Origin: Octopus bimaculoides
Taxonomy: Eukaryota
Assembly: GCF_001194135.2 (NCBI RefSeq)
Contig: NC_068982.1
Location: 115,404,688 to 115,442,374, forward strand
Reading direction: 5' to 3'
Length of the DNA stretch: 37,687 bases
The notes beneath the pieces were generated by a model. That model was not told where the DNA came from and did not search any database. It saw only the letters and a list, made by a program, of their open reading frames with translations. The first letter of the stretch is position 1. Each line of letters begins with the position of its first letter. Of this stretch, positions 237 through 32,049 are shown piece by piece. Position numbers and translations under genes: made by a program.

Positions 237-1715
237 TCATTAACATCATTTAATGTCTGGTTTCCATGCTGGCATGGGTTAGGTGCTTTGATCGGAGCTA
301 GTAACACCGGGAGATGTAACAGGTTCCATTGTCTGTTCTGGCATGGTTTCTATGGCTGGATGCTCTTCCAAATGTTAACCACTCCATAAAGTGTACTGGT
401 TATTTTTTATGTGGTCCCATAAAAAGCACTGGTGCTTTTTATGCGGTCCCAGCACTGGTATCAATTCTGCTGTGGTGGACAGGCCTTCTTGGTGAATGGC
501 TCGTCTTGAGTACAGCAAAATGTCAGATATCTTAGTCCTTTGTCATCCCCTTTATAAGATTCAGTGTCTTGAGATCAGCTTTCAATATTTTGTTCTGTGT
601 CTTTCTGGGCCTCCCTCTTTCACAATTTCTTTCCACTTCAAGTGATTGGCACTTTTGTATGCAACTGTCTACATCCATATACATCACATGACCTAACCAG
701 CACAGTCTTCTCGCTTGCACACTGCATTTAATTCCTCTTATGCTCAACTTTTCTCTCAATACACTAGCACTGTCACACATGTACACTTACACTGCACATC
801 CAGCAGAGCATACTTGCTTCATCCCTCTCTAGCCTTCGCATGTCTTCTGCGTTCAGGGCCCACATCTCACTGACATGTAGCATTGCTGTTTGTATACAAA
901 CATCATACAATCTTTCTTTCATGCAGAGCGAGACCTTTAGTTGCCAACTAAAGTAAAAGCTTTCTGAATTTTTTCTATATTATTCTTATTCTAGCAATTA
1001 CACTTTCAGTGCATTCTCCCACACAGCCAGTTAGATCCCCTAAGTAGTGAAATTATCCACTACTTCTGAAGAGTATCTGTAGTTTTTGTGGCTCTTGTGC
1101 ATTTTCCACATACAAACACTATCTTCTCTGACAACCTTCTTATTATTCTGCTGCACCTCTTGTGTATCGATAGCTTGCACTGGGTACACCATATAGACTT
1201 TTTGTCTACACCTTTCCTACATATCAAGCAAGGCCATTTACCTGATGGGGAAGGATCCTGTCCATTTTCTTGCTAATTCCAGTAAGTAGTCTTTGCTAAG
1301 TTAACCTTAAGGCCTTTTGATTTCAGGTTTTGCTTCCACACCTGGAATTTCTTTTCTAGTTCTGTTACAGAATCTGCTATAAGAGCAAGATCATCAGCAT
1401 ATAACTGTTTCCAGGAGCAGCTGGTATTGAATTCTTGTGTTATGGCCTGGATGATGATGATGAATAGGAAATTGAGAACCGAACCCTGATGAGTGCCTAC
1501 CTGTACACTAAATTCATCACTATGCTCATGGTTAACTCTCACCTTACAAAATATCTGTACATGGTATGTGTGATTTTCAAAGGTCACTCGTCCCCAAGCT
1601 TCGTCAGAGCTCACCATATCACCCAGTGAGGTACCCTATCAAAGGTTTTCTCTGAATCAACAATCAGAAAGTACAATGGTTTATTCTTAGCCAAATACTT
1701 CTCCTTGCATGTGCG
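237..1715 (-). mobile_element. Degenerate RTE-clade LINE: RT core, C-terminus and 3' UTR ending in a (TGA)n-like tail
   Basis: Minus-strand peptides DSEKTFDRVP, QVGTHQGSVL..F, LYADDLALIA, RRLCWLGHVM and GRPRKT. The 3' UTR motif ggctggatgc(t)cttcc recurs throughout the window. Confidence 0.85.
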
Positions 1716-17100: not shown

Positions 17101-18563
17101 ATCATCAACATCATCATTGTTTAACGTCCACTTTCCATGGGTTGGACGATTTGACTGAGGACTGGCGAACCAGATGGCTGCACCAGGCTCCAATCTGATC
17201 TGGCAGAGTTTCTACAGCTGGATGCCCTTCCTAACGCCAACCACTTTGCGAGTGTAGTGGGTGCTTTTACGTGCCACCAGTACAAGGGCCAGTCAGGCAG
17301 TACTGGCAACAGCCATGCTCTGGCAATGATCATGCTGGGACGGTGCTGTTAGCACTCCACTGGCACAAGTGCCAGTCATCGAATTTGGTTCAATTATGAT
17401 TTCGATTTCACTTGCCCCAACAGGTCTTCGCAAGCAGAGTTTAGAGTCCAATGAAGGAAAGGTACACACAAGTGGACTGGCTACACCCCTGACAAAAGCC
17501 ACGGATTATGGTCTCACTTGGCTTGCCGGGTCTTCTCACGCACAGCATATTTCCAAAGGTCTTGGTCACTAGTCATTGCCTCGGTGAGGCCTAATGTTCA
17601 AAGGCTTCATGTTCACTACCTCATCCAAAGGTCTTGGTCACTAGTCATTGCCTCAGTGAGGCCTAATGTTCAAAGGCCTCATGTTCACTACCTCATCCCA
17701 GGTTCCTTCAACTGCTAGGGTGTGGCACTTTTTCACACAGCTATCCTCATCCATTCTCGCCACATGACCATACCAGCGCAGTCGTCTCTCTTGCACACCA
17801 CAACTGATGCTTCTTAGGTTCAACTTTCTCTCAAGGTACTTACACTCTGTCGAGTACGCACACTGACATTACACATCCATCGGAGCATACTGGCTTCATT
17901 TCTTTCGAGCTTACGCATGTCCTCAGCAGTCACGGCCCATGTTTCACTGCCATGAAGCATGGCTGTTTGTACACATGCGTCATAGTCTGCCTTTTACTCT
18001 GAGCGAGAGGCCCTTTGTCACCAGCAGAGGTAAGAGCTCTCTGAACTTTGCCCAGGCTATTCTTATTCTAGCAGCTACACTTTCAGCGCACCCTCTCCCG
18101 CTACTGACATGGTCACCTACGTAATGGAGCTTTCCCTGTCTTCATAATTGCTTTATCTATCATGGTACTGTCAACTCGGATAGCTGGTCCCTCTGTTGGG
18201 TTGACATTCAGCAAACTCTTTCTCCCATTCATTCTCTTTATTGAGCAACTTTTCATAGTGGCGTCTCCAAACCTCTCTCTTTGCAGCCACGTTCAGTGCA
18301 AGTGAACCATCATCCATGCGGACACATTTCTCTCCTACGACATCACAATTCTCTCTCACACACAATCTTGCAACATGAAATACCTCAAGTCTTTGATCCT
18401 CACAGTGCAGAACAATTGGCAACTTTTTTCTCATCTGCTTCCTCTCTGGCTAAATAAACCTGTCTCCTAGCTTCCCTTCTGGCAGTCTGATACAATTCCC
18501 TGCTACCGCTGTTCTTCCAGTCCTTCCAAGCCTGTTTCTTTTCTCTAATAGCCCTGTCAACAG
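17101..18563 (-). mobile_element. Relatively young RTE LINE, 5'-truncated and internally deleted, with a ~74-bp tandem duplication at about 17552-17698
   Basis: VDRAIREKKQAWKDWK, EVWRRHYEKLLNKENEW, AARIRIAWAKFRELLPLL and RRLRWYGHV. The RT core is missing at a jump near 18140. Full 3' UTR, CpGs retained. Confidence 0.9.
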
Positions 18564-18564
18564 C

Positions 18565-19369
18565 ACAGTATTGGCAGCGGCCGATGATGCGGTGATGTTG
18601 GCGGCAGCTGCGGAGATGTTTGTGGAGGTGGTATCGGCAGTCGCAGCTGTGGTGATGTTCGTAGTGGTGGTGGCAGCAGTTGTGACGTTGCCGATGGTTG
18701 CGGTGGTGGCAGCGGCGGCAGCACAGGTGGTCGTGGTGGTGANNNNNNNNNNNNNNNNNNNNNNNNNNNNNNNNNNNNNNNNNNNNNNNNNNNNNNNNNN
18801 NNNNNNNNNNNNNNNNNNNNNNNNNNNNNNNNNNNNNNNNNNNNNNNNNNNNNNNNNNNNNNNNNNNNNNNNNNNNNNNNNNNNNNNNNNNNNNNNNNNN
18901 NNNNNNNNNNNNNNNNNNNNNNNNNNNNNNNNNNNNNNNNNNNNNNNNNNNNNNNNNNNNNNNNNNNNNNNNNNNNNNNNNNNNNNNNNNNNNNNNNNNN
19001 NNNNNNNNNNNNNNNNNNNNNNNNNNNNNNNNNNNNNNNNNNNNNNNNNNNNNNNNNGGCGGCAGCGGCGGTTGCGGAGATGATCCCGGTGGTGGTGGCG
19101 GTGGCGGCGGTGGCGGAGATGATCCTGGCGGCGGCAGCGGCGGTTGCGGAGATGATCCTGGTGGTGGTGGTGATGGCGTCGGCGGTGGCTGCGGAGATTA
19201 TCGTAGTAGTGATGGTGGTGGTGGTTTTGATGGTGTTTGGTGGCGACTGTTGGAAAAGGACTTGAAAATTCACAGAATTTGGTCTCATGTGCGTGCAGAA
19301 AAATATTTAACATCCGAGGATATTCATCCTGATACGGTTACATTAGAGGACGACACTCCAATTCGCTGA
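18565..19369. other. GC-rich 3-periodic repeat with long open frames on both strands (Gly/Cys/Asp-rich on +; His/Arg/Cys-rich or Thr/Ala-rich on -), interrupted by a 315-N gap
   Basis: + frame 19058-19369: GGSGGCGDDPGG...WWRLLEKDLKIHRIWSHVRAEKYLTSEDIHPDTVTLEDDTPIR*. - frame from ATG 19313: ...HHQDHLRNRRCRRQDHLRHRRH.... Coding status is unresolved. Confidence 0.4.
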
Positions 19370-19962: not shown

Positions 19963-20259
19963 AGACTTCTTCGCCACGGTGATGTCTATTCTGATTTTTT
20001 GCAAATTTTAAAGGCTAACTTTATAAAATTTGATTTATAGGGAAAACAATTGGAACAATATTGTAAACAGACGAAAACCACAAAGATCCCTCCAATAACC
20101 ATATTTGTTCAATAATATCTTGTCGGTTTAAGTGTGTGAGAGAGAGAGAAATTGTGTGTATGAGATTGAAAGAGGGGCGTGAGAGAGTTAATGCTTATGT
20201 ATGTATATAAGAGAGTGGGGAGACTTTCAAATGGTGAGCCTAGATGATGACCATTTTAG

Positions 20260-20545
20260 AGAGTGAGAGGGAAGGAGAGAGAAGGAGCGCGAGGAAGACA
20301 AACGAATGAAGAGAGAGGGGTGAAAGAGAGAGAGAGAGGGGGGGAAGAAAGAAAGAGAGGAAGAAAAGATGAATGAAGAAGAGAAGAGAGAGAGGGAGAA
20401 AGAAAGAGGGAGAGAGAAAGGAGACTGGGGTCAGAACTTTGAGGGAGAGGGAGGGAAGAAAGAAAGAGGAACAAAAAAAAAAGACGGATGAAGAGAAGAG
20501 AGGGAGGGAGAAAGAAAGAGGGAGAGAGAAAGAGAAAGAGAGGGA
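20260..20545. repeat. Degenerate GA-rich polypurine tract
   Basis: Direct. Confidence 0.85.
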
Positions 20546-20659
20546 GACAAGTCAAAACTTTCTTGATTCTAAGCCAGGATTCGAAACTGAATCTTGCATT
20601 TTTCTTACCAGTTCCTATTGTTCCGACTTTTGCAGAACTTGTGGCTATGTCGAGAGAGC

Positions 20660-20977
20660 TGGTTCCTCCTGATGATGTCTTGAGCTAACTGGATCCTAAT
20701 CCACCAAGGGAAGGTATGTCAGAAGAAAGTAATTCAACAACGCGGGTTGATGAACCATAAGACGTGTGGCCAGAACCTCCTGAAAAATAACCATAGCGAG
20801 GGACATTCCACAGTTGAATTAAAACAGTCACAAACAGTGAAAGAAGACATGCACCCAACACCAGAGCTGAAGACACCTCCGAAAGGGGGTGGCCCCGCCA
20901 CGTCAAAACGGTAGAGGAGTAGGGGCCGAAACCGGACGTGGTTCCTCCTGATGATGTCTTGAGCTAACTGGATCCTA
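20660..20977. repeat. 39-bp perfect direct repeat, copies 279 bp apart
   Basis: tggttcctcctgatgatgtcttgagctaactggatccta at 20660-20698 and 20939-20977. Confidence 0.9.
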
Positions 20978-21116: not shown

Positions 21117-21314
21117 TGTTTTAAGCGAGCCATGGCAGTTCAGCCCGAACAATAAAGACAAAACAAATTTTCGGAAACATTTATTAATCGTCTTATATTC
21201 TTAATTCCAATTTTCAACTTTGTTTTAAGCGACCCATGCAGTTCAGCCCAAACAATAAAGACAAAACAAATTTTCGGAAACATTTTTATTAATCGTCTTA
21301 TATTCTTAATTCCA
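21117..21314 (-). terminator. Tandemly duplicated polyadenylation cassette of the protamine-like gene
   Basis: ~93-bp units at 21221-21314 and 21117-21209. On the minus strand each has AATAAA (21290-21285; 21185-21180) followed by a U/GU-rich tract (tttgttttgtctttattgtt). Confidence 0.65.
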
Positions 21315-21445
21315 CGTGCGGTAAGCAATAATGGCCAACTTAAGAAGCGAAAGTCCAAGAGATGTTAAGTGCCTCATTTTGTGAAGTCGCAAAAGCCAAC
21401 CGAGAACTATTTTTATAGAAATAGTTCAATTCACTTCTGTCGTCT

Positions 21446-21715
21446 TCATCGTCGCCTCCTTCGGCCGCCCCTCCTTCTCCTTCGTCCTCTCCTGCCTCTT
21501 CTTCTTGACCTTCGGGATCGTCGTCGTCGTCGTCCACCAATGGAATACACTCGTCTACGTCTTAATCTGCCTCCGTTTAAACTACCATAACTTCTCACAC
21601 TGGATACACTGCGCTCTCGTCTTCCGCCACCGACCAGCAGACTCTGCCGGCTCATAGATGGGCGGCGTATTGCTCTACGCGTTCTCGAACGCGATACGTT
21701 TTCTTTAACAATCAT
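21446..21715 (-). CDS. Intronless arginine-rich protamine-precursor-like protein (sperm nuclear basic protein), 89 aa
   Basis: MIVKENVSRSRTRRAIRRPSMSRQSLLVGGGRRERSVSSVRSYGSLNGGRLRRRRVYSIGGRRRRRSRRSRRRGRRGRRRRRGGRRRRR*. 38/89 residues are Arg and 22 of the last 28 are Arg. Mixed CGN/AGR codons, so not a simple repeat. ATG has A at -3. TATA upstream and AATAAA about 155 nt after the stop. The ORF track's GTG start at 21733 is not a eukaryotic start. Confidence 0.8.
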   Translation of the reverse strand: MIVKENVSRSRTRRAIRRPSMSRQSLLVGGGRRERSVSSVRSYGSLNGGRLRRRRVYSIGGRRRRRSRRSRRRGRRGRRRRRGGRRRRR

Positions 21716-21816
21716 CCTTGTGTCTGTCGTCACTCAAGGCTTCCGAAAGTGTCTCACCCCTCTCTCTCTCTCTATTGCAGCGAAAGTTAGAGCAAGATTT
21801 AAAATCGGTACAACTA

Positions 21817-21915
21817 TGAACTAACTCGACGAACGTCGTGTTTTATATAAGGTAGGTGTACCACGTGATCAGCCAGATCAAAGATATTATTGGTTGAAAA
21901 GAACGGTCACGTGAC
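21817..21915 (-). promoter_or_regulatory. Pol II promoter of the protamine-like gene
   Basis: Minus strand: TATATAAAA starting at 21849; Inr-like TTAGTT/TCATAG about 27-32 nt downstream (21822/21817); CACGTG at 21862-21867; CCAAT at 21893-21889; palindromic GTCACGTGAC at 21906-21915. Confidence 0.65.
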
Positions 21916-22027
21916 AGGAATGGTACATTGATATTCCCATTTCCAGACATACAGACACACGTTCGTGCGCGTTTTCGCATTCGTATTCACACACATGCAC
22001 ACGCTCACACACGCACACATGCACACG

Positions 22028-22029
<2 letters not shown>

Positions 22030-22088
<59 letters not shown>
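22030..22088. repeat. (CA)n microsatellite upstream of the promoter
   Basis: Direct. Confidence 0.95.
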
Positions 22089-22091
<3 letters not shown>

Positions 22092-22359
22092 GAGTTCGTT
22101 GAAAGTTCCAGCGTTCCAAGTTCTCACGCAATTCTTTATGACATCATTGAAATTACGCTCACCGCCAAAGTTTTGAAAGGAAAGCAAATTCAATTTCGAA
22201 AAAAAAAAAAAATATTGGGAATACGTTTGTGGACAGACATGATTAGATGCATTCACTTTGTCCGTAGTAGCTACTTAAATTATGTTTGGTGGTCGGTAAA
22301 GAAGCAAACACGCACGCACGCACGCACGCACACATGCACGCACACACGTACGTACGTAT

Positions 22360-22775
22360 GTATGTCTTCTATTTTTTTAATTATCATAAATCTTCCACTG
22401 AGGAGGGAGCTAGTTTCCAACAAGGATACAAGGCTCCATCTTTGGGATGTAGTTAACACAGACAAATTCACATTTGGAACTTGAGAGGAGTCTTGCATAT
22501 TTTTTCTGTTCGACTCACAGATTGCACTTGTAATGTACGAATTAGCTGCTCGATTTCTCTTTCTGAAAATCCCAGTTTATCCAGATTCTCCTGTAAGCTT
22601 TTACTAACAAAACCTAGTGCTCCAGTTATCATTGATATGAATTCATAGTCTAGATATAGAGGGTGGAGGTTTCGAAGCAGATGTCCATAGATATCCTCCT
22701 CTTCTTTGATTTTCAAAGAGATATTTATATCTGCAGGGCAGCTGACCTCTCTGATGGTACATACCTTTGCGTCAT
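22360..22775 (-). mobile_element. R4/Dong-type 3' end, a diverged second family
   Basis: KVCTIREVSCPADINISLKIKEEEDIYGHLLRNL..ITGALGFV..QVQSVSRTEKICKT parallels the C-terminus at 25560-25850. Flanked by (TATG)n on both sides. Confidence 0.8.
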
Positions 22776-24859
22776 ATGTATGTATGTATGTTATTTCGCA
22801 CAACTTAGCTACATAGCCTTATTACGTACAACTTGTATTGACTTAAACGCCAAATCGAAAGACAGCCAGTGTATACGTATATTTACAGTTCTGTCTAAAG
22901 ATCGTATTTTTCTATTGCTATTCTAGTCTCAGCCCTTCCATATCTGTCCGTTTTTCCTGTCTGCTCATCTTACACCCCAGCAGCTTCTGTTGCTGATATT
23001 TCCATATTGAACAATATCGATAGAAGGTGTCAAAATCGTGATGGTATTTAGTCGCCGACTAATGGGGGATAGAGGATATTTGCGTTCATTTGTGTGTATG
23101 TATTTTTGTTCTCCCCGTAAATTTATTTGTCGACCAAACTGTGATATGTTTTAAATAAATACATACATACATACAAGCAAATCTCTATACAACTTACTAA
23201 CAAAAAGTGAAGGAGATAGAAGTGATGTTTGGCGATAGCAAAAAGAGGATACTGATCACTATCAAGCAGGAACTAATAGCTGTCAATGAGAAACTCCGAC
23301 ATCAGAAGAAAACAACCGAGAGAAAAACAATAGACAAACAATTTAACCGGAACCAGGCAGTAACGTACAGAGATATGAGAGGAGAAACGGTGAACATCAT
23401 AGAAGCTCCTTCACTAGAAGACATAGACTCCTTCTGGAGGAAAATTTGGAACGAGGAGATGGAGTTTAACCAAGATGCTCTGTGGCTGGAAGAAATTTGA
23501 AGAAGTTATTGTCCCTGCATTACACCCAAGACAGACAGTATTGATGGTGATACCTTTATGACTGTAATCCAGAAACTTCAGGAAGGAAAAGCCCTTGGAA
23601 GAGACTTGATTGTTGGATACTAATACAAGCAGCTAACCTTCTAATGACCATATCTTATCAACCTATACGAGCAAGCTCTCAATAGGAATAGTAGCATATC
23701 AGACTAGTTAGCTCTGGCAGAGACAAAACTGATCCCCAAATGCAGAATCACTCACGTGAGCGTATTTAAACCTCTTCCTCTAAGACCATTGTGAAAGTAA
23801 TAGCATGATCACAGCAGAACAAGCTACTGGAGGAAGGATGTGTACCGAGCAATTGTTAGTAAACAAACCTGTAATATCAGAGGTGCGGGAGCATAGAAGG
23901 GACCTAGTTTAAATGTAACTAGACTACAAGAAAGCCTTTGACTCTGTCCCCTACTCATAGATGTTAGAAGCCCTTCGACAAGTCCCAGTGAACATAGTCA
24001 AAGCCATAGTTGACCTGACTTCATCATGGGCCACCATCTTGAAATTAAACAGAAGGATTGTATTACCACTGATAGAATACAGTATCGCAGAGGCACATTC
24101 CAAGGGATCAGCATTTCTGTGATGTTATTTATACTTTCTGTAAACTCCTTCTTACTCAGGTTGAGGATGTCTAAAGGATATCTCACTTGTTCCCAAGGAA
24201 ACAGAAATAGCAAAATTACACACTATTTTTTTGTGGATGACTCGAAACTATATGCCAAGAATATGATTGAGATGAAAAAGTGCCTTGACATGGTTACAAT
24301 ATTCTCAAAGGATATAGGGCTAGAGTTTGATCAAGATAAATGTTGCTATATGGTTGTGAAAAGAGAGAAAACTGTAAACCAGACTTGGAACATCTCCATC
24401 AACAACTTGACTGTTTCCTCTATATCTGATGAGTAATGTTACAGGTATCATGGGGTAGACGAAAACATATCTTACAATGGCACCTGTAACAATTTTACAG
24501 TCAAATAAAAAAAATTTGGACCTTGGAACTCTCTGCATTCAATAAAACAGTGGCCTTCAATCTGTTTGTAATGCCAGTACTCTTACCGACATTTGGGCTG
24601 TTTGATTGGACTCTTGATGGGATCCGAGCCATTGATGTGAAAACCCAGAAGATACTAACGAGCACATCAATTCAGACTGCTTTTGAATGTCGTATCATTT
24701 CCCTTCCTCAATATCTTTTAACCACCAAGTATGGAAGTGCATCCCCTGACCATGTTTGCGTACATGAGGCTGATAACATCATAAGACTTGGAAAGCAGCT
24801 CCTTGAGCAGCATTCCTTATCTGATAATCTTAAATACATGCCCAAAGAAGTCATACGAT

Positions 24860-25009: not shown

Positions 25010-25857
25010 CGTACGACTCTACTGCAATGTATCATGAGATGAAAGGAAGAACATATATCAGCAGAAGACTATGCATGGATAAGTTCGTAGAAAGCTGTGA
25101 GATGATAGTAACATTGATCATCAAAGTAGTCTATAATGGACCAACAACTGGATTACTATCTTGCAATTTAAAGGGTATGCGTTTGCAATCCAGGAACAGA
25201 AAATATCAACCAAATACCTGATGCACAGAAGGGACAGAGATGCAGGGAAAAGCAGCAAAATGTGACAACCAATGCAGACTTAGTGGAGTTCACACTGAAG
25301 AAATCGCCTACATCATAAGCAGTTGTCTGAAAATGTCATCACGGTATTATCTACCGATGAGAGATGATGTTGTAGCTAGGACACTGTATAACGAGATCCG
25401 TCGGAAGGATAACTCCGAGGACAGAAAAAAAATAAGAACCCACAGTATGGTGGAAGCCATAGCCACTCATACTAAAAAGGAGTACCCGTGGAATGACCCA
25501 GTGAAAACCTCAATAAAATGTAAACACAATAGACCTGACATAATGATTTGGGATAGAGAAGAGAAACTGTGTACAGTTGTGGAAATTGGCTGCCCAGCAG
25601 ATGTTAGCATAAAGCTGAAAATAAGTGAAAAAGAAAATACCTATGCTGAACTATTGAGAAATCTGCAGTTACTCTATCCAGATTACAAGTTTAAGTTTAT
25701 ACTTGCAGTTATTGGGGCACTGCCTAAATACCAATCTTGAGAAATTAGGCTTCTTAAAACCAGAAAGGAAAAAGCTAATTCGAAGACTACAGATCCAATC
25801 TATCACTGGAATTGTGAAAATCTGTAAAACTTTCCAGAAGTTTATCATTTAAGTATA

Positions 25858-30112: not shown

Positions 30113-30565
30113 ATGTTTGTGTGCCTGTGTTTGTCCCCCTAGCATTGCTTGACAATCGATGCTGGTGTGTTTATGTCCCCGTCACTTAGCGGTTCGGCAA
30201 AAAGAGACCGATAGAATAAGTACTAGGCTTACAAAGAATAAGTCCCGGGGTTGATTTGCTCGACTAAAGGCGGTGCTCCAGCATGGCTGCAGTCAAATGA
30301 CTGAAACAAGTAAAAGAGTAAAGAGAAAGAGTATACATTATGCAAGACAAAATTGCACGTTATAAACGAAATGAAATCTTGGAAATTCTCAAGAAACAAA
30401 AGTTTCCATTATTGATAGATGAGAGTTCAGACATCTCATTGACACAAATCTTAGCAATAGTTGTTTGCTTTTTTGATGAACAATCGCTTAATGTCAAGGA
30501 TGCTCTTCTGGATGCAATTGTAGTAGAAAATGGTTCATCTCAGCGTTTGTATGATGCCCTCAAGT
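29174..30565 (+). pseudogene. hAT transposon fossil: left end, BED zinc finger and first catalytic Asp
   Basis: Ac-like terminus TAGGGATG at 29174. From 29691: YSQNFKKSWL..WLQQ..CYCVCC..LLDH..TAKH. From 30340: FPLLIDESSDISLTQILAIVV. Split by a SINE and truncated by an RTE. Confidence 0.8.
30007..30331 (+). mobile_element. 5'-truncated cephalopod SINE with internal (TA)n/(TG)n, nested in the hAT fossil
   Basis: gaccaaagccttgtgagtggatttggtagacggaaactgaaagaagcc ... cagtcaaatgactgaaacaagtaaaagag. Confidence 0.8.
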
Positions 30566-30566
30566 C

Positions 30567-30830
30567 TCACCAACAAGAGATTGCCATCTATCTTGATCTT
30601 AGGCAATGGTTTGCAGTTATTCCCCAGATTGTAGTTGCCTGCCTGTGCTTCAGTTTCTGTAGACATTCTCCATGTTTTTTTGTTTTTTTTTGGTCTGTCA
30701 CACTTGTCCCTTCTTTGGGTGTCCACTGGAGGGCTTACTTTGTAATATTGGAAACATTTTCCATAGGGTGTGTCCCAGTCAAACCACATTTCCTCCACTT
30801 GATTTGGGCTTTGATAGGTTACTGGTTCAC
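30567..30830 (-). mobile_element. RTE-clade LINE 3' end (third family)
   Basis: Across frameshifts: QIKWRK..G.H, NITK*ALQWTP, RPKK..TWRMSTETEA and A*DQDRWQSLVG, matching the RTE WIGHTLR/ALxWNP/GRPKxTW/DRxRW pattern. Confidence 0.65.
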
Positions 30831-32049
30831 CTTTTCCTGAGAAAGTATTTGATAATGTGGACAGGGTGACACTGGAAATTGGTATCACTGTCATCATACT
30901 TTGAGTGATTATTACTTTGGTCAGATTTGCTTATGATTGATTAACATGTCAACTTGTACATGGTGAAACTTTAATGCAACTATTCTCTGTCCTGATGTGA
31001 GTTGGGCAAGTGAGACAAAGATGTCTACTATATCCTCTTCTTTTGCTAATGACAATTGACTAAGTGATGAAAGAAACAACCGAAGTACAAGAGGAATACC
31101 AAGGTTAAACAGTAGCATCATTAATAATCATGGTTGTTTGCCTAGGACTGTTGACACCTCTCATTTGCAATGTTTTCTTCATATCTGAACATTAAAAAGA
31201 AAGAAAGAAAGAAAGAAAGAAAGAGAGAAAGGAAGAAAAGCAAAACAGAGAGTGTGAGAGAGAAAGAAAGAAGAAAGACATATTTTACCCTCTGAAGTTC
31301 TATTACAATTGAATGAAGATCTAGGTTTGAGAGAAACAACAAATGCTACAGATAGAAATGCAGCAAAGCAAATCCATAGACCCAGTTTTCAGTGACATGA
31401 TGGTACTACTGCTGTTGTTGATTGTATTTAATTAGCTATCCTTCAGGTAACACCCTGCTAACTTCAGCTTTGTCATTTCTCTTATTCAACAAAGTACCTG
31501 TCATATTGTGCAAAATTATGCTGGTTGTATCCGCTTCTCAAGAAATTGATCTGTGTATATGTATTTATGTATATTTTGTGTGTATGTGTTTTGGTGTGTA
31601 AATTTACATGTGGTATCTGAGTATGTGTGTGTGTGTTACAAGTATTCAGACTTGTCTGGTTCTCTTTCTATCCACATTTTCCACAAATAACTTAACCTAC
31701 AAATGTTCTAGCTGGACATTGGCTGTATCACTGACATTACTCTCACCCACATCACTCCTCTAACTAGCTCATAAAAAATAGTATGCCATGCATGTGTGCA
31801 CGTGTATGTGTGTGTGTGTGTATGAGTGTGTGTATGTGTGCATGTGTATGTGTCAGAGAGAGAGAGAGAGAGTATGTGTGTGTGTGTGTGTGTGCGTTTA
31901 TGATGGAAGGTGAGTAAGCTGTGTGAACAACAGAACTGGTGAGTGTAAGCAAAAGCAAAAAGAAGCCAAAGTGCCTTGTAATCCCTGATCAAGTAAACTA
32001 CTGGTATATAAGTGTTCCAATATATTGTGCATCACACTACCCACAGATA

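Follow-up and report, generated by a model that had tools for sequence, protein, structure and literature searches.

How a single compact gene could supply a cephalopod sperm nucleus with a series of ever more basic DNA-binding proteins is the question raised by a short open reading frame (ORF) in the genome of Octopus bimaculoides. The ORF lies in a stretch of 37,687 nucleotides (NCBI RefSeq assembly GCF_001194135.2, contig NC_068982.1, positions 115,404,688 to 115,442,374 of the forward strand), the whole of which is called the window below and is numbered from its first letter. It encodes, on the minus strand, an arginine-rich protein in which Gly-Gly stands directly before Arg at four places, written here as GG|R junctions. 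An initial annotation took these junctions for the cleavage sites of a precursor that is processed in several steps into a small mature protamine. From the features described below, we regard the ORF as probably an intronless octopod gene for a small sperm protamine precursor, the leader of which would be cleaved at S-[LI]-x-GG|R junctions to leave an end product of 28-30 residues. Staged cutting of the precursor at three of its four GG|R sites is plausible, as judged from the sequence.

The Reading Frame and Its Product

Read on the minus strand, window positions 21446-21715 translate from ATG to TGA as MIVKENVSRSRTRRAIRRPSMSRQSLLVGGGRRERSVSSVRSYGSLNGGRLRRRRVYSIGGRRRRRSRRSRRRGRRGRRRRRGGRRRRR, a protein of 89 residues. 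The coding sequence and the two parts into which its product can be divided are the following:

21446..21715, minus strand: coding sequence, a single exon of 89 codons plus TGA, predicted to encode a protamine precursor
21533..21715, minus strand: leader, residues 1-61, with 26% Arg (16 Arg), most of the Ser (11 of 13) and three S-[LI]-x0-2-GG|R junctions
21449..21532, minus strand: predicted mature protamine, residues 62-89, 28 amino acids (aa) with 78.6% Arg, starting at the putative maturation site

The product (10.76 kDa, isoelectric point (pI) 12) contains 38 Arg (42.7%), 13 Ser, 12 Gly, one Lys and no Cys. Protamines, the arginine-rich kind of sperm nuclear basic protein (SNBP), have been described as proteins of 30-106 aa with a pI of at least 12 and with clusters of Arg, in which N-terminal cleavage of a precursor is common (PMC12216123). 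The ORF product can be read as a protamine-type protein because its Arg clusters, its pI and its small size, together with the 42.7% Arg, fit these published criteria (PMC12216123).

The four GG|R junctions follow residues 31, 49, 61 and 84, and the strings by which the initial annotation had identified them (LLVGGG|RRE, SLNGG|RLRRRR, SIGG|RRRRRS and GG|RRRRR) are all four present in the minus-strand translation. They bound five blocks in which Arg makes up, from the N- to the C-terminus, 23, 22, 42, 74 and 100% of the residues, so that the rise in Arg density from block to block that had been proposed was indeed measured, and the charge density of the product increases toward the C-terminus. 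The description of the N-terminal part as RS-rich also held, since residues 1-61 contain 11 of the 13 Ser and six of the ten RS/SR dipeptides.

Gly-Gly stands directly before the poly-Arg domain in YSIGG|RRRRRS (residues 57-67), and the composition of the protein breaks sharply at this place: residues 60-89 consist of Gly, Arg and Ser only, whereas the upstream part uses 15 amino-acid types. It is because of this break at residues 60-62 that a leader of 59-61 residues can be told from a predicted mature protamine of 28-30 residues. Residues 62-89 (calculated mass 3856.5 Da) have the length of ~28 aa that had been expected of the C-terminal product and contain Arg clusters of 5, 2, 3, 2, 5 and 5, with single Gly spacers at residues 74 and 77 inside the Arg-rich block. 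If the Gly-Gly were kept, the predicted mature block would comprise 30 aa (residues 60-89, 3970.6 Da) and its coordinates would extend to 21538. Stepwise cutting of the precursor at its three leader junctions would take the net charge per residue from 0.42 through 0.52 and 0.68 to 0.79. Further calculated average masses are 10626.2 Da for residues 2-89, 7276.3 Da for residues 32-89, 5327.2 Da for residues 50-89 and 4334.0 Da for residues 57-89.

The Arrangement of the GG|R Junctions

The arrangement of GG|R in the ORF is non-random. All four runs of at least two Gly are followed by Arg, and at least four GG|R sites were obtained with a probability of 5e-4 in 200,000 composition-preserving shuffles, or of 3.6e-4 when shuffling was done within the leader and within the C-terminal block. 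In the three leader junctions, which are QSLLVGGG|R, GSLNGG|R and also YSIGG|R, the motif S-[LIVM]-x0-2-GG-R is common to all. Searched for as S-[LIVM]-x0-2-GG+R, the motif occurs three times, at residues 25, 45 and 58, with a shuffle P of ~3e-6 that has to be discounted because the motif was defined post hoc. The fourth junction, RRRGG|RRRRR, and the single-Gly spacers at residues 74 and 77 are without the S-[LI] context, unlike the three leader sites. No DNA similarity above that of shuffled controls was detected among the three leader modules, and thus the motif recurs at the amino-acid level; a recent internal DNA duplication was rejected as its source, the alignments of the leader modules being no better than those of shuffles.

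The 38 Arg residues are encoded by six kinds of codons (AGA 12, CGA 12, AGG 7, CGT 3, CGC 3 and CGG 1), and Tandem Repeats Finder reported only (CGA)5 and a weak hexamer in the Arg tract. This mixed codon usage and the lack of a DNA repeat show that it is at the level of the protein that the Arg tract is maintained. When all six frames of the window were scanned for Arg density, the ORF was the only Arg-dense stretch that does not derive from a (GA)n or (CAC)n microsatellite, and a second protamine gene sought in the window by the same scan did not emerge, the other stretches being (GA)n- and (CAC)n-derived artefacts. Among the 112 ATG-initiated ORFs of at least 60 aa in the window, two have more than 16% Arg, one being this ORF and the other the same ORF read from Met21.

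Two further stretches with striking translations were noted. Over window positions 21340-21540, the purine-rich minus strand encodes in an alternative frame an Asp/Glu-rich peptide (VDDDDDDPEGQEEEAGEDEGEGG...) without an ATG, which we regard as a by-product of the Arg codons rather than an overlapping gene. At 18450-19313, a minisatellite of the CCACCGCC/CACCAC type lies beside an assembly gap (N at about 18742-19056) and is open in several frames, which read His/Arg/Cys-rich, Thr/Ala-rich or Pro-rich; an ORF of this region was considered as a basic protein and rejected, as it is most likely a low-complexity artefact of the minisatellite.

Putative Promoter, Predicted Untranslated Regions and CpG Island

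The ORF begins in the context ACAAGGATGA, with A at -3, and its start codon is the first ATG downstream of a TATA box. The elements that surround it are, from the promoter to the poly(A) signals:

21861..21914, minus strand: proximal promoter block with a palindrome, CCAAT and CACGTG, of presumed promoter function
21905-21914, minus strand: GTCACGTGAC, a perfect palindrome of 10 bp lying upstream of both the CCAAT and the TATA box
about 21889-21893, minus strand: CCAAT box
21862-21867, minus strand: second CACGTG
21842..21849, minus strand: TATA box TATATAAA, 134 nt upstream of the ATG, with no ATG between
21716..21820, minus strand: predicted 5' untranslated region (UTR) of ~100 nt, the transcription start being placed ~30 nt past the TATA box
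21285..21445, minus strand: predicted 3' UTR, with the first AATAAA at 21285-21290, beginning 156 nt past the stop codon
21117..21314, no strand assigned: tandem duplication of 103 bp, 1.9 copies with 94% matches, which duplicates the AATAAA
21000..22400, no strand assigned: CpG-retaining island, CpG observed/expected 1.1-1.7

These elements suggest a compact gene without introns that is driven by a TATA box and has a predicted mRNA of ~550 nt; the transcription start, the poly(A) site and the promoter function are predictions. The octamer TATATAAA occurs only seven times in the window with both strands counted, and the chance of finding a TATA box and an AATAAA so placed was estimated from the motif densities in the window to be below 1%. 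The predicted 5' UTR holds a (GA)n run and an in-frame stop codon at 21734-21736, seven codons upstream of the ATG. The possibility that the ORF is an exon of a larger gene was rejected in view of this stop codon and of the lack of a plausible splice acceptor (polypyrimidine/AG) or GT donor. A second AATAAA, created by the 103-bp duplication, lies 261 nt past the stop codon, so that there may be two poly(A) sites ~105 nt apart.

CACGTG palindromes are clustered around the gene, three of the seven found in the window falling within 600 bp; the third of the cluster, at 21313-21318, lies inside the predicted 3' UTR. The ORF locus is also the strongest CpG-retaining patch of the window, with a CpG observed/expected ratio of 1.57 in the coding sequence, 0.40 in the whole window and, for most of the 1-kb bins, 0.03-0.5. 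Patches with normal CpG, though weaker, are found at 19-20 kb and 26-28 kb. Positions 21988-22089, ~75 bp upstream of the promoter block, are taken up by a (CA)51 microsatellite, the flanks of which are degenerate and of CACGCA type, and a related array is present at 22295-22360.

From Precursor to Mature Protamine: A Proposed Sequence of Events

In vertebrates and invertebrates alike, protamine precursors commonly undergo N-terminal cleavage, the squid being one example (PMC12216123), and precursor cleavage together with phosphorylation has been linked to a patterned condensation of spermatid chromatin of the phase-separation type (PMC13251019). For the octopus gene, the following course of events can be proposed. 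The gene would be transcribed in spermatids from its TATA/CCAAT/E-box promoter into an mRNA of ~550 nt. The moderately basic, Ser-rich leader (residues 1-61) of the translated precursor would allow histones to be replaced by a protein with relatively weak DNA binding, and phosphorylation of the leader Ser residues may modulate this binding. Endoproteolysis at the S-[LI]-x-GG|R junctions would then strip the leader. Cleavage at the three leader sites in sequence can reasonably be inferred, and the cuts would most likely proceed from the N-terminus, at 31/32, then at 49/50 and then at 61/62. Each cut would raise the net charge per residue and thus lead to a stepwise tightening, and the end product, an Arg/Ser/Gly protamine of 28-30 residues, would fix the final condensed state of sperm chromatin.

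Two details of the initial annotation do not fit well into this scheme. It listed the fourth junction (84/85) with the other three, but cleavage there is unlikely because the S-[LI] context is lacking and the cut would leave a peptide of only five residues; this Gly-Gly is probably a hinge between Arg clusters within the mature protein. It also described the Ser-containing motifs as phosphorylation sites of the SRPK type, a label that is weakly founded: there is one short SRSR (residues 8-11), while the contexts of the other Ser residues, RRxS or RxRxxS, suit basophilic kinases equally well.

A bolder version of the same scheme is that the S-[LI]-x-GG|R sites form a 'charge ratchet' read by one Gly-Gly-directed endoprotease, one gene thereby giving rise to timed DNA binders of increasing charge that drive successive condensation patterns. 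The several small octopus protamines described as homologous at the protein level, which are said to have 33, 30 and 28 residues, would in that case be trimming products of one precursor and not the products of separate genes. With starts at residues 57, 62 and 60, the ORF would yield products of 33, 28 and 30 aa, and two of the three leader sites, LVGG and LNGG, fit the LxGG specificity of cysteine proteases of the ubiquitin-like-protein/deubiquitinase type. Sites of the LxGG class are used by a viral protease in the maturation of protamine-like viral core proteins. We nevertheless consider this extension of the scheme unlikely.

Points against the Proposal and Rival Explanations

Several observations weigh against a processed protamine precursor, in addition to the post hoc definition of the motif. 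In a word-indexed search of 5.8e9 proteins, the full protein shared words with 8000 candidates and the leader alone with 4, none of which scored; an exhaustive phmmer comparison with 1.84e9 representatives gave 0 matches; a Pfam scan of the protein returned no family at E <= 0.1, ribosomal families included; scans of metagenome contigs and viral contigs gave no confirmed match; and no exact gene call for the ATG, GTG or Met21 start is on record. The leader itself is strongly basic (pI 12, 16 Arg in 61 residues) and might be retained; the leader of the Sepia precursor is not so basic, which adds to this concern. The protamine of another octopod, Eledone, is Cys-rich, and the ORF contains no Cys.

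The empty homology searches are weak negatives, as the composition correction of HMMER suppresses poly-Arg matches. SNBP genes are short, of low complexity and fast-evolving; they hardly ever receive an annotation, and BLAST searches for them fail (PMC12216123). For these reasons the empty searches weigh little against the gene, and for a protein of the protamine class they are to be expected. In the literature searched, the peptide strings of the ORF do not occur and no octopod protamine gene, leader sequence or cleavage motif is described, the references being at the protein level only.

The main rival of the proposal is that the ORF encodes a real sperm nuclear basic protein in which the GG|R junctions are not staged cleavage sites: its 88-89 residues would be kept whole or cut once, perhaps at a different place, with Gly-Gly pairs serving as flexible hinges. 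The basic leader could stay on DNA, mollusc protamines reach 106 aa (PMC12216123), and GG|R 84/85 as well as the single Gly 74 and 77 inside the Arg-rich block can only be spacers. However, the extended S-[LI]-x0-2-GG-R motif is common to the three leader junctions and is not found in the internal Gly spacers, the amino-acid alphabet drops from 15 to 3 letters at residues 60-62, and cephalopod protamines, like many others, undergo N-terminal processing of a precursor as a rule (PMC12216123), which makes this explanation an unlikely one, though it is to be taken seriously. Less credence still is due to the explanation that no protein is made and that the ORF arose by chance, or has decayed, in purine-rich and CpG-rich non-coding DNA. 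Given the number of ATG-ORFs of at least 60 aa in the window (112), an ORF of 90 codons is not rare, another frame gives an equally striking Asp/Glu-rich peptide, homologues and gene calls were not found in the searches, and transposon debris and microsatellites surround the ORF. Against this, several independent signals meet at the locus, namely a TATA box and a first ATG that has A at -3, an AATAAA at +156, a cluster of E-boxes and a CpG island; in addition, the Arg codons are heterogeneous with no underlying DNA repeat, the GG|R pattern is non-random, and the acidic frame has neither an ATG nor a promoter-consistent start.

A TATA-driven intronless mini-gene is typical of fish protamine genes, which speaks against a non-sperm role of the Arg-rich protein, be it nucleolar/RNA-binding, ribosomal-protein-like or that of an intracellular antimicrobial-type peptide. 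Such a role appears very unlikely also because the 28-residue tail, composed of R, S and G only with 79% Arg, exceeds ribosomal or RS-domain composition, and a Pfam match at E <= 0.1 is absent even when ribosomal families are included; it has to be borne in mind that high Arg alone does not define a protamine and that many ribosomal proteins are Arg-rich (PMC12216123). An endogenous viral or transposon-borne basic core protein, i.e., the protamine-like DNA condenser of a DNA virus, is a highly improbable alternative, for which it can be said that the gene lies among transposon fragments. Several large DNA viruses do encode small Arg/Ser-rich core proteins, but relatives were not found in the viral-contig scan, none of the adjoining ORFs is virus-like, no terminal repeats are seen to bracket the gene, and the gene has a promoter and poly(A) signals of its own that are of the host type. 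Strings such as G-R-R and G-R-x-R-R look like the canonical signals for amidation and dibasic processing, and a secreted precursor of the neuropeptide or prohormone type would be cut at Gly-Arg-Arg to ...LLVGG-amide, ...GSLNG-amide and VYSIG-amide. The 28-residue poly-Arg tail has no place in prohormone precursors, and a neuropeptide precursor was rejected, its probability being negligible, since no signal peptide was found in the ORF product: the Kyte-Doolittle mean over 9 residues peaks at 0.41, hydrophobic runs reach 3 residues at most (MIV), and the average of the first 25 residues is -1.17. Lacking a signal peptide, the product cannot enter the secretory pathway, where the convertases and the amidating enzyme reside. 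A histone H1-derived protamine-like (PL) protein was rejected as well, as no winged-helix (H1/H5 globular) domain was found at Pfam E <= 0.1; with 61 aa, the leader is both too polar and too short to form a globular domain.

Genomic Surroundings

The window has the character of animal DNA, with ~37% GC, microsatellites, an assembly gap and reverse-transcriptase fragments. The only named relatives of a transposon-type ORF at 25240-25740 (plus strand), 3.5 kb from the gene, are uncharacterised Octopus bimaculoides proteins with 68-76% identity. The genome is that of an octopod, and therefore the analogy with cephalopod protamines fits.

The ORF at 25240-25740 sits just downstream of an RVT_1 fragment (24026-24436) and shares a 51%-identical module (CPAD.. 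LLRNL .. GAL) with the oppositely oriented ORF at 22468-22803 (minus strand); both are probably retrotransposon remnants. An exact-sequence record of one neighbouring transposable-element ORF is absent. More mobile-element debris is present at 1273-1617 (minus strand) and 30340-30840 (plus strand), including a second reverse-transcriptase fragment and a weak sub-threshold match to DUF4371, which is transposase-associated. Two exact 39-bp direct repeats (20660-20698 and 20939-20977), adjoined by a long (GA)n-rich tract at 20250-20560, bracket ~240 bp of unrelated sequence, and the region 20660-20977 is possibly a small insertion flanked by long duplications. An Rfam scan of the window gave no match.

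Significance and Comparison with Known Protamine Systems

Protamine precursors that undergo processing have long been on record for cuttlefish and squid, a neogastropod and mammals, and the octopus gene is an addition to that class. What the gene model gives is a complete precursor sequence with an unusually long, basic and Ser-rich leader, a candidate cleavage motif that is repeated three times, and exact predicted masses of the intermediates. With these, a test by mass spectrometry becomes possible of whether stepwise increases in protamine charge drive patterned condensation in cephalopod spermatids. The responsible protease could be sought as well. Should staged cleavage prove wrong, an ordinary addition to the protamine catalogue would remain.

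Among the closest parallels are those in cuttlefish and squid. The conversion of spermatid protein T to protamine Sp in Sepia officinalis and the protamine gene of Loligo opalescens were reportedly described by Wouters-Tyrou/Martin-Ponthieu in 1991 and by Lewis et al. in 2004 (both cited within PMC3073880 and PMC12216123). The Sepia/Loligo leader is ~21 residues long and ends in Gly-Gly directly before the Arg run. The octopus leader, with 61 aa, is about three times longer, is strongly basic and rich in Ser, and has three GG|R junctions where the other has one; the predicted mature part is half the size, 28-30 aa versus 56-58. The likeness lies in the cephalopod precursor with an N-terminal leader, which is removed in spermatids in Sepia and Loligo (PMC12216123) and is predicted to be cleaved off in the octopus, and in the mature part, which in the octopus block as in squid has ~79% Arg with Ser spacers. 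The mature squid protamine has 58 aa, 79% Arg, 4-5 Tyr and one Pro (PMC3073880). The Tyr (4-5) and Pro of a squid-type mature protamine of ~56-58 aa were not found in the octopus block, which consists of G, R and S only.

Within the octopods, the published work on the Po proteins of O. vulgaris is at the protein level. Gimenez-Bonafe et al. in 2004 (Mol Reprod Dev 68:232) reportedly found the proteins Po1-Po5, with protamines of 44, 33, 28 and 30 residues. The main protamine, of 44 residues, is said to consist of Arg, Ser and Gly only, with ~80% Arg, and to be accompanied in sperm by a putative late precursor form. Residues 62-89 of the octopus protein resemble these reported values in their length (28 aa), their restriction to G, R and S and their Arg content of 78.6%. 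The reported lengths of 33, 28 and 30 residues are exactly those that ORF products beginning at residues 57, 62 and 60 would have, which is a striking lead for the protamine reading. The 44-residue protamine as reported cannot derive from this ORF, the last 44 residues of which include L, N, V, Y and I.

Outside the cephalopods, the precursors of mammalian protamine P2 and of Murex brandaris undergo stepwise N-terminal processing. Stepwise trimming coupled to phosphorylation/dephosphorylation raises charge density in these systems as the chromatin goes through patterned condensation states, as is proposed for the octopus. There is no sequence relationship, P2 being His- and Cys-containing and the Murex protein Lys/Gly-containing, and we know of no repeated S-[LI]-x-GG|R site in either precursor. 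Murex and precursor processing have been discussed in the literature (PMC13251019). The P2 protein of the honey bee Apis mellifera belongs to another phylum, has no detectable homology to the octopus protein and differs from it in cleavage contexts and modifications, e.g., pyroglutamate. In this protein, the Arg-rich protamine is preceded by an N-terminal region (residues 1-69) that is long, disordered and less charged and was proposed to drive phase-separation transitions before it is cleaved (PMC12216123). With 69 residues in the bee P2 leader, the long leader predicted for the octopus precursor is thus not unprecedented.

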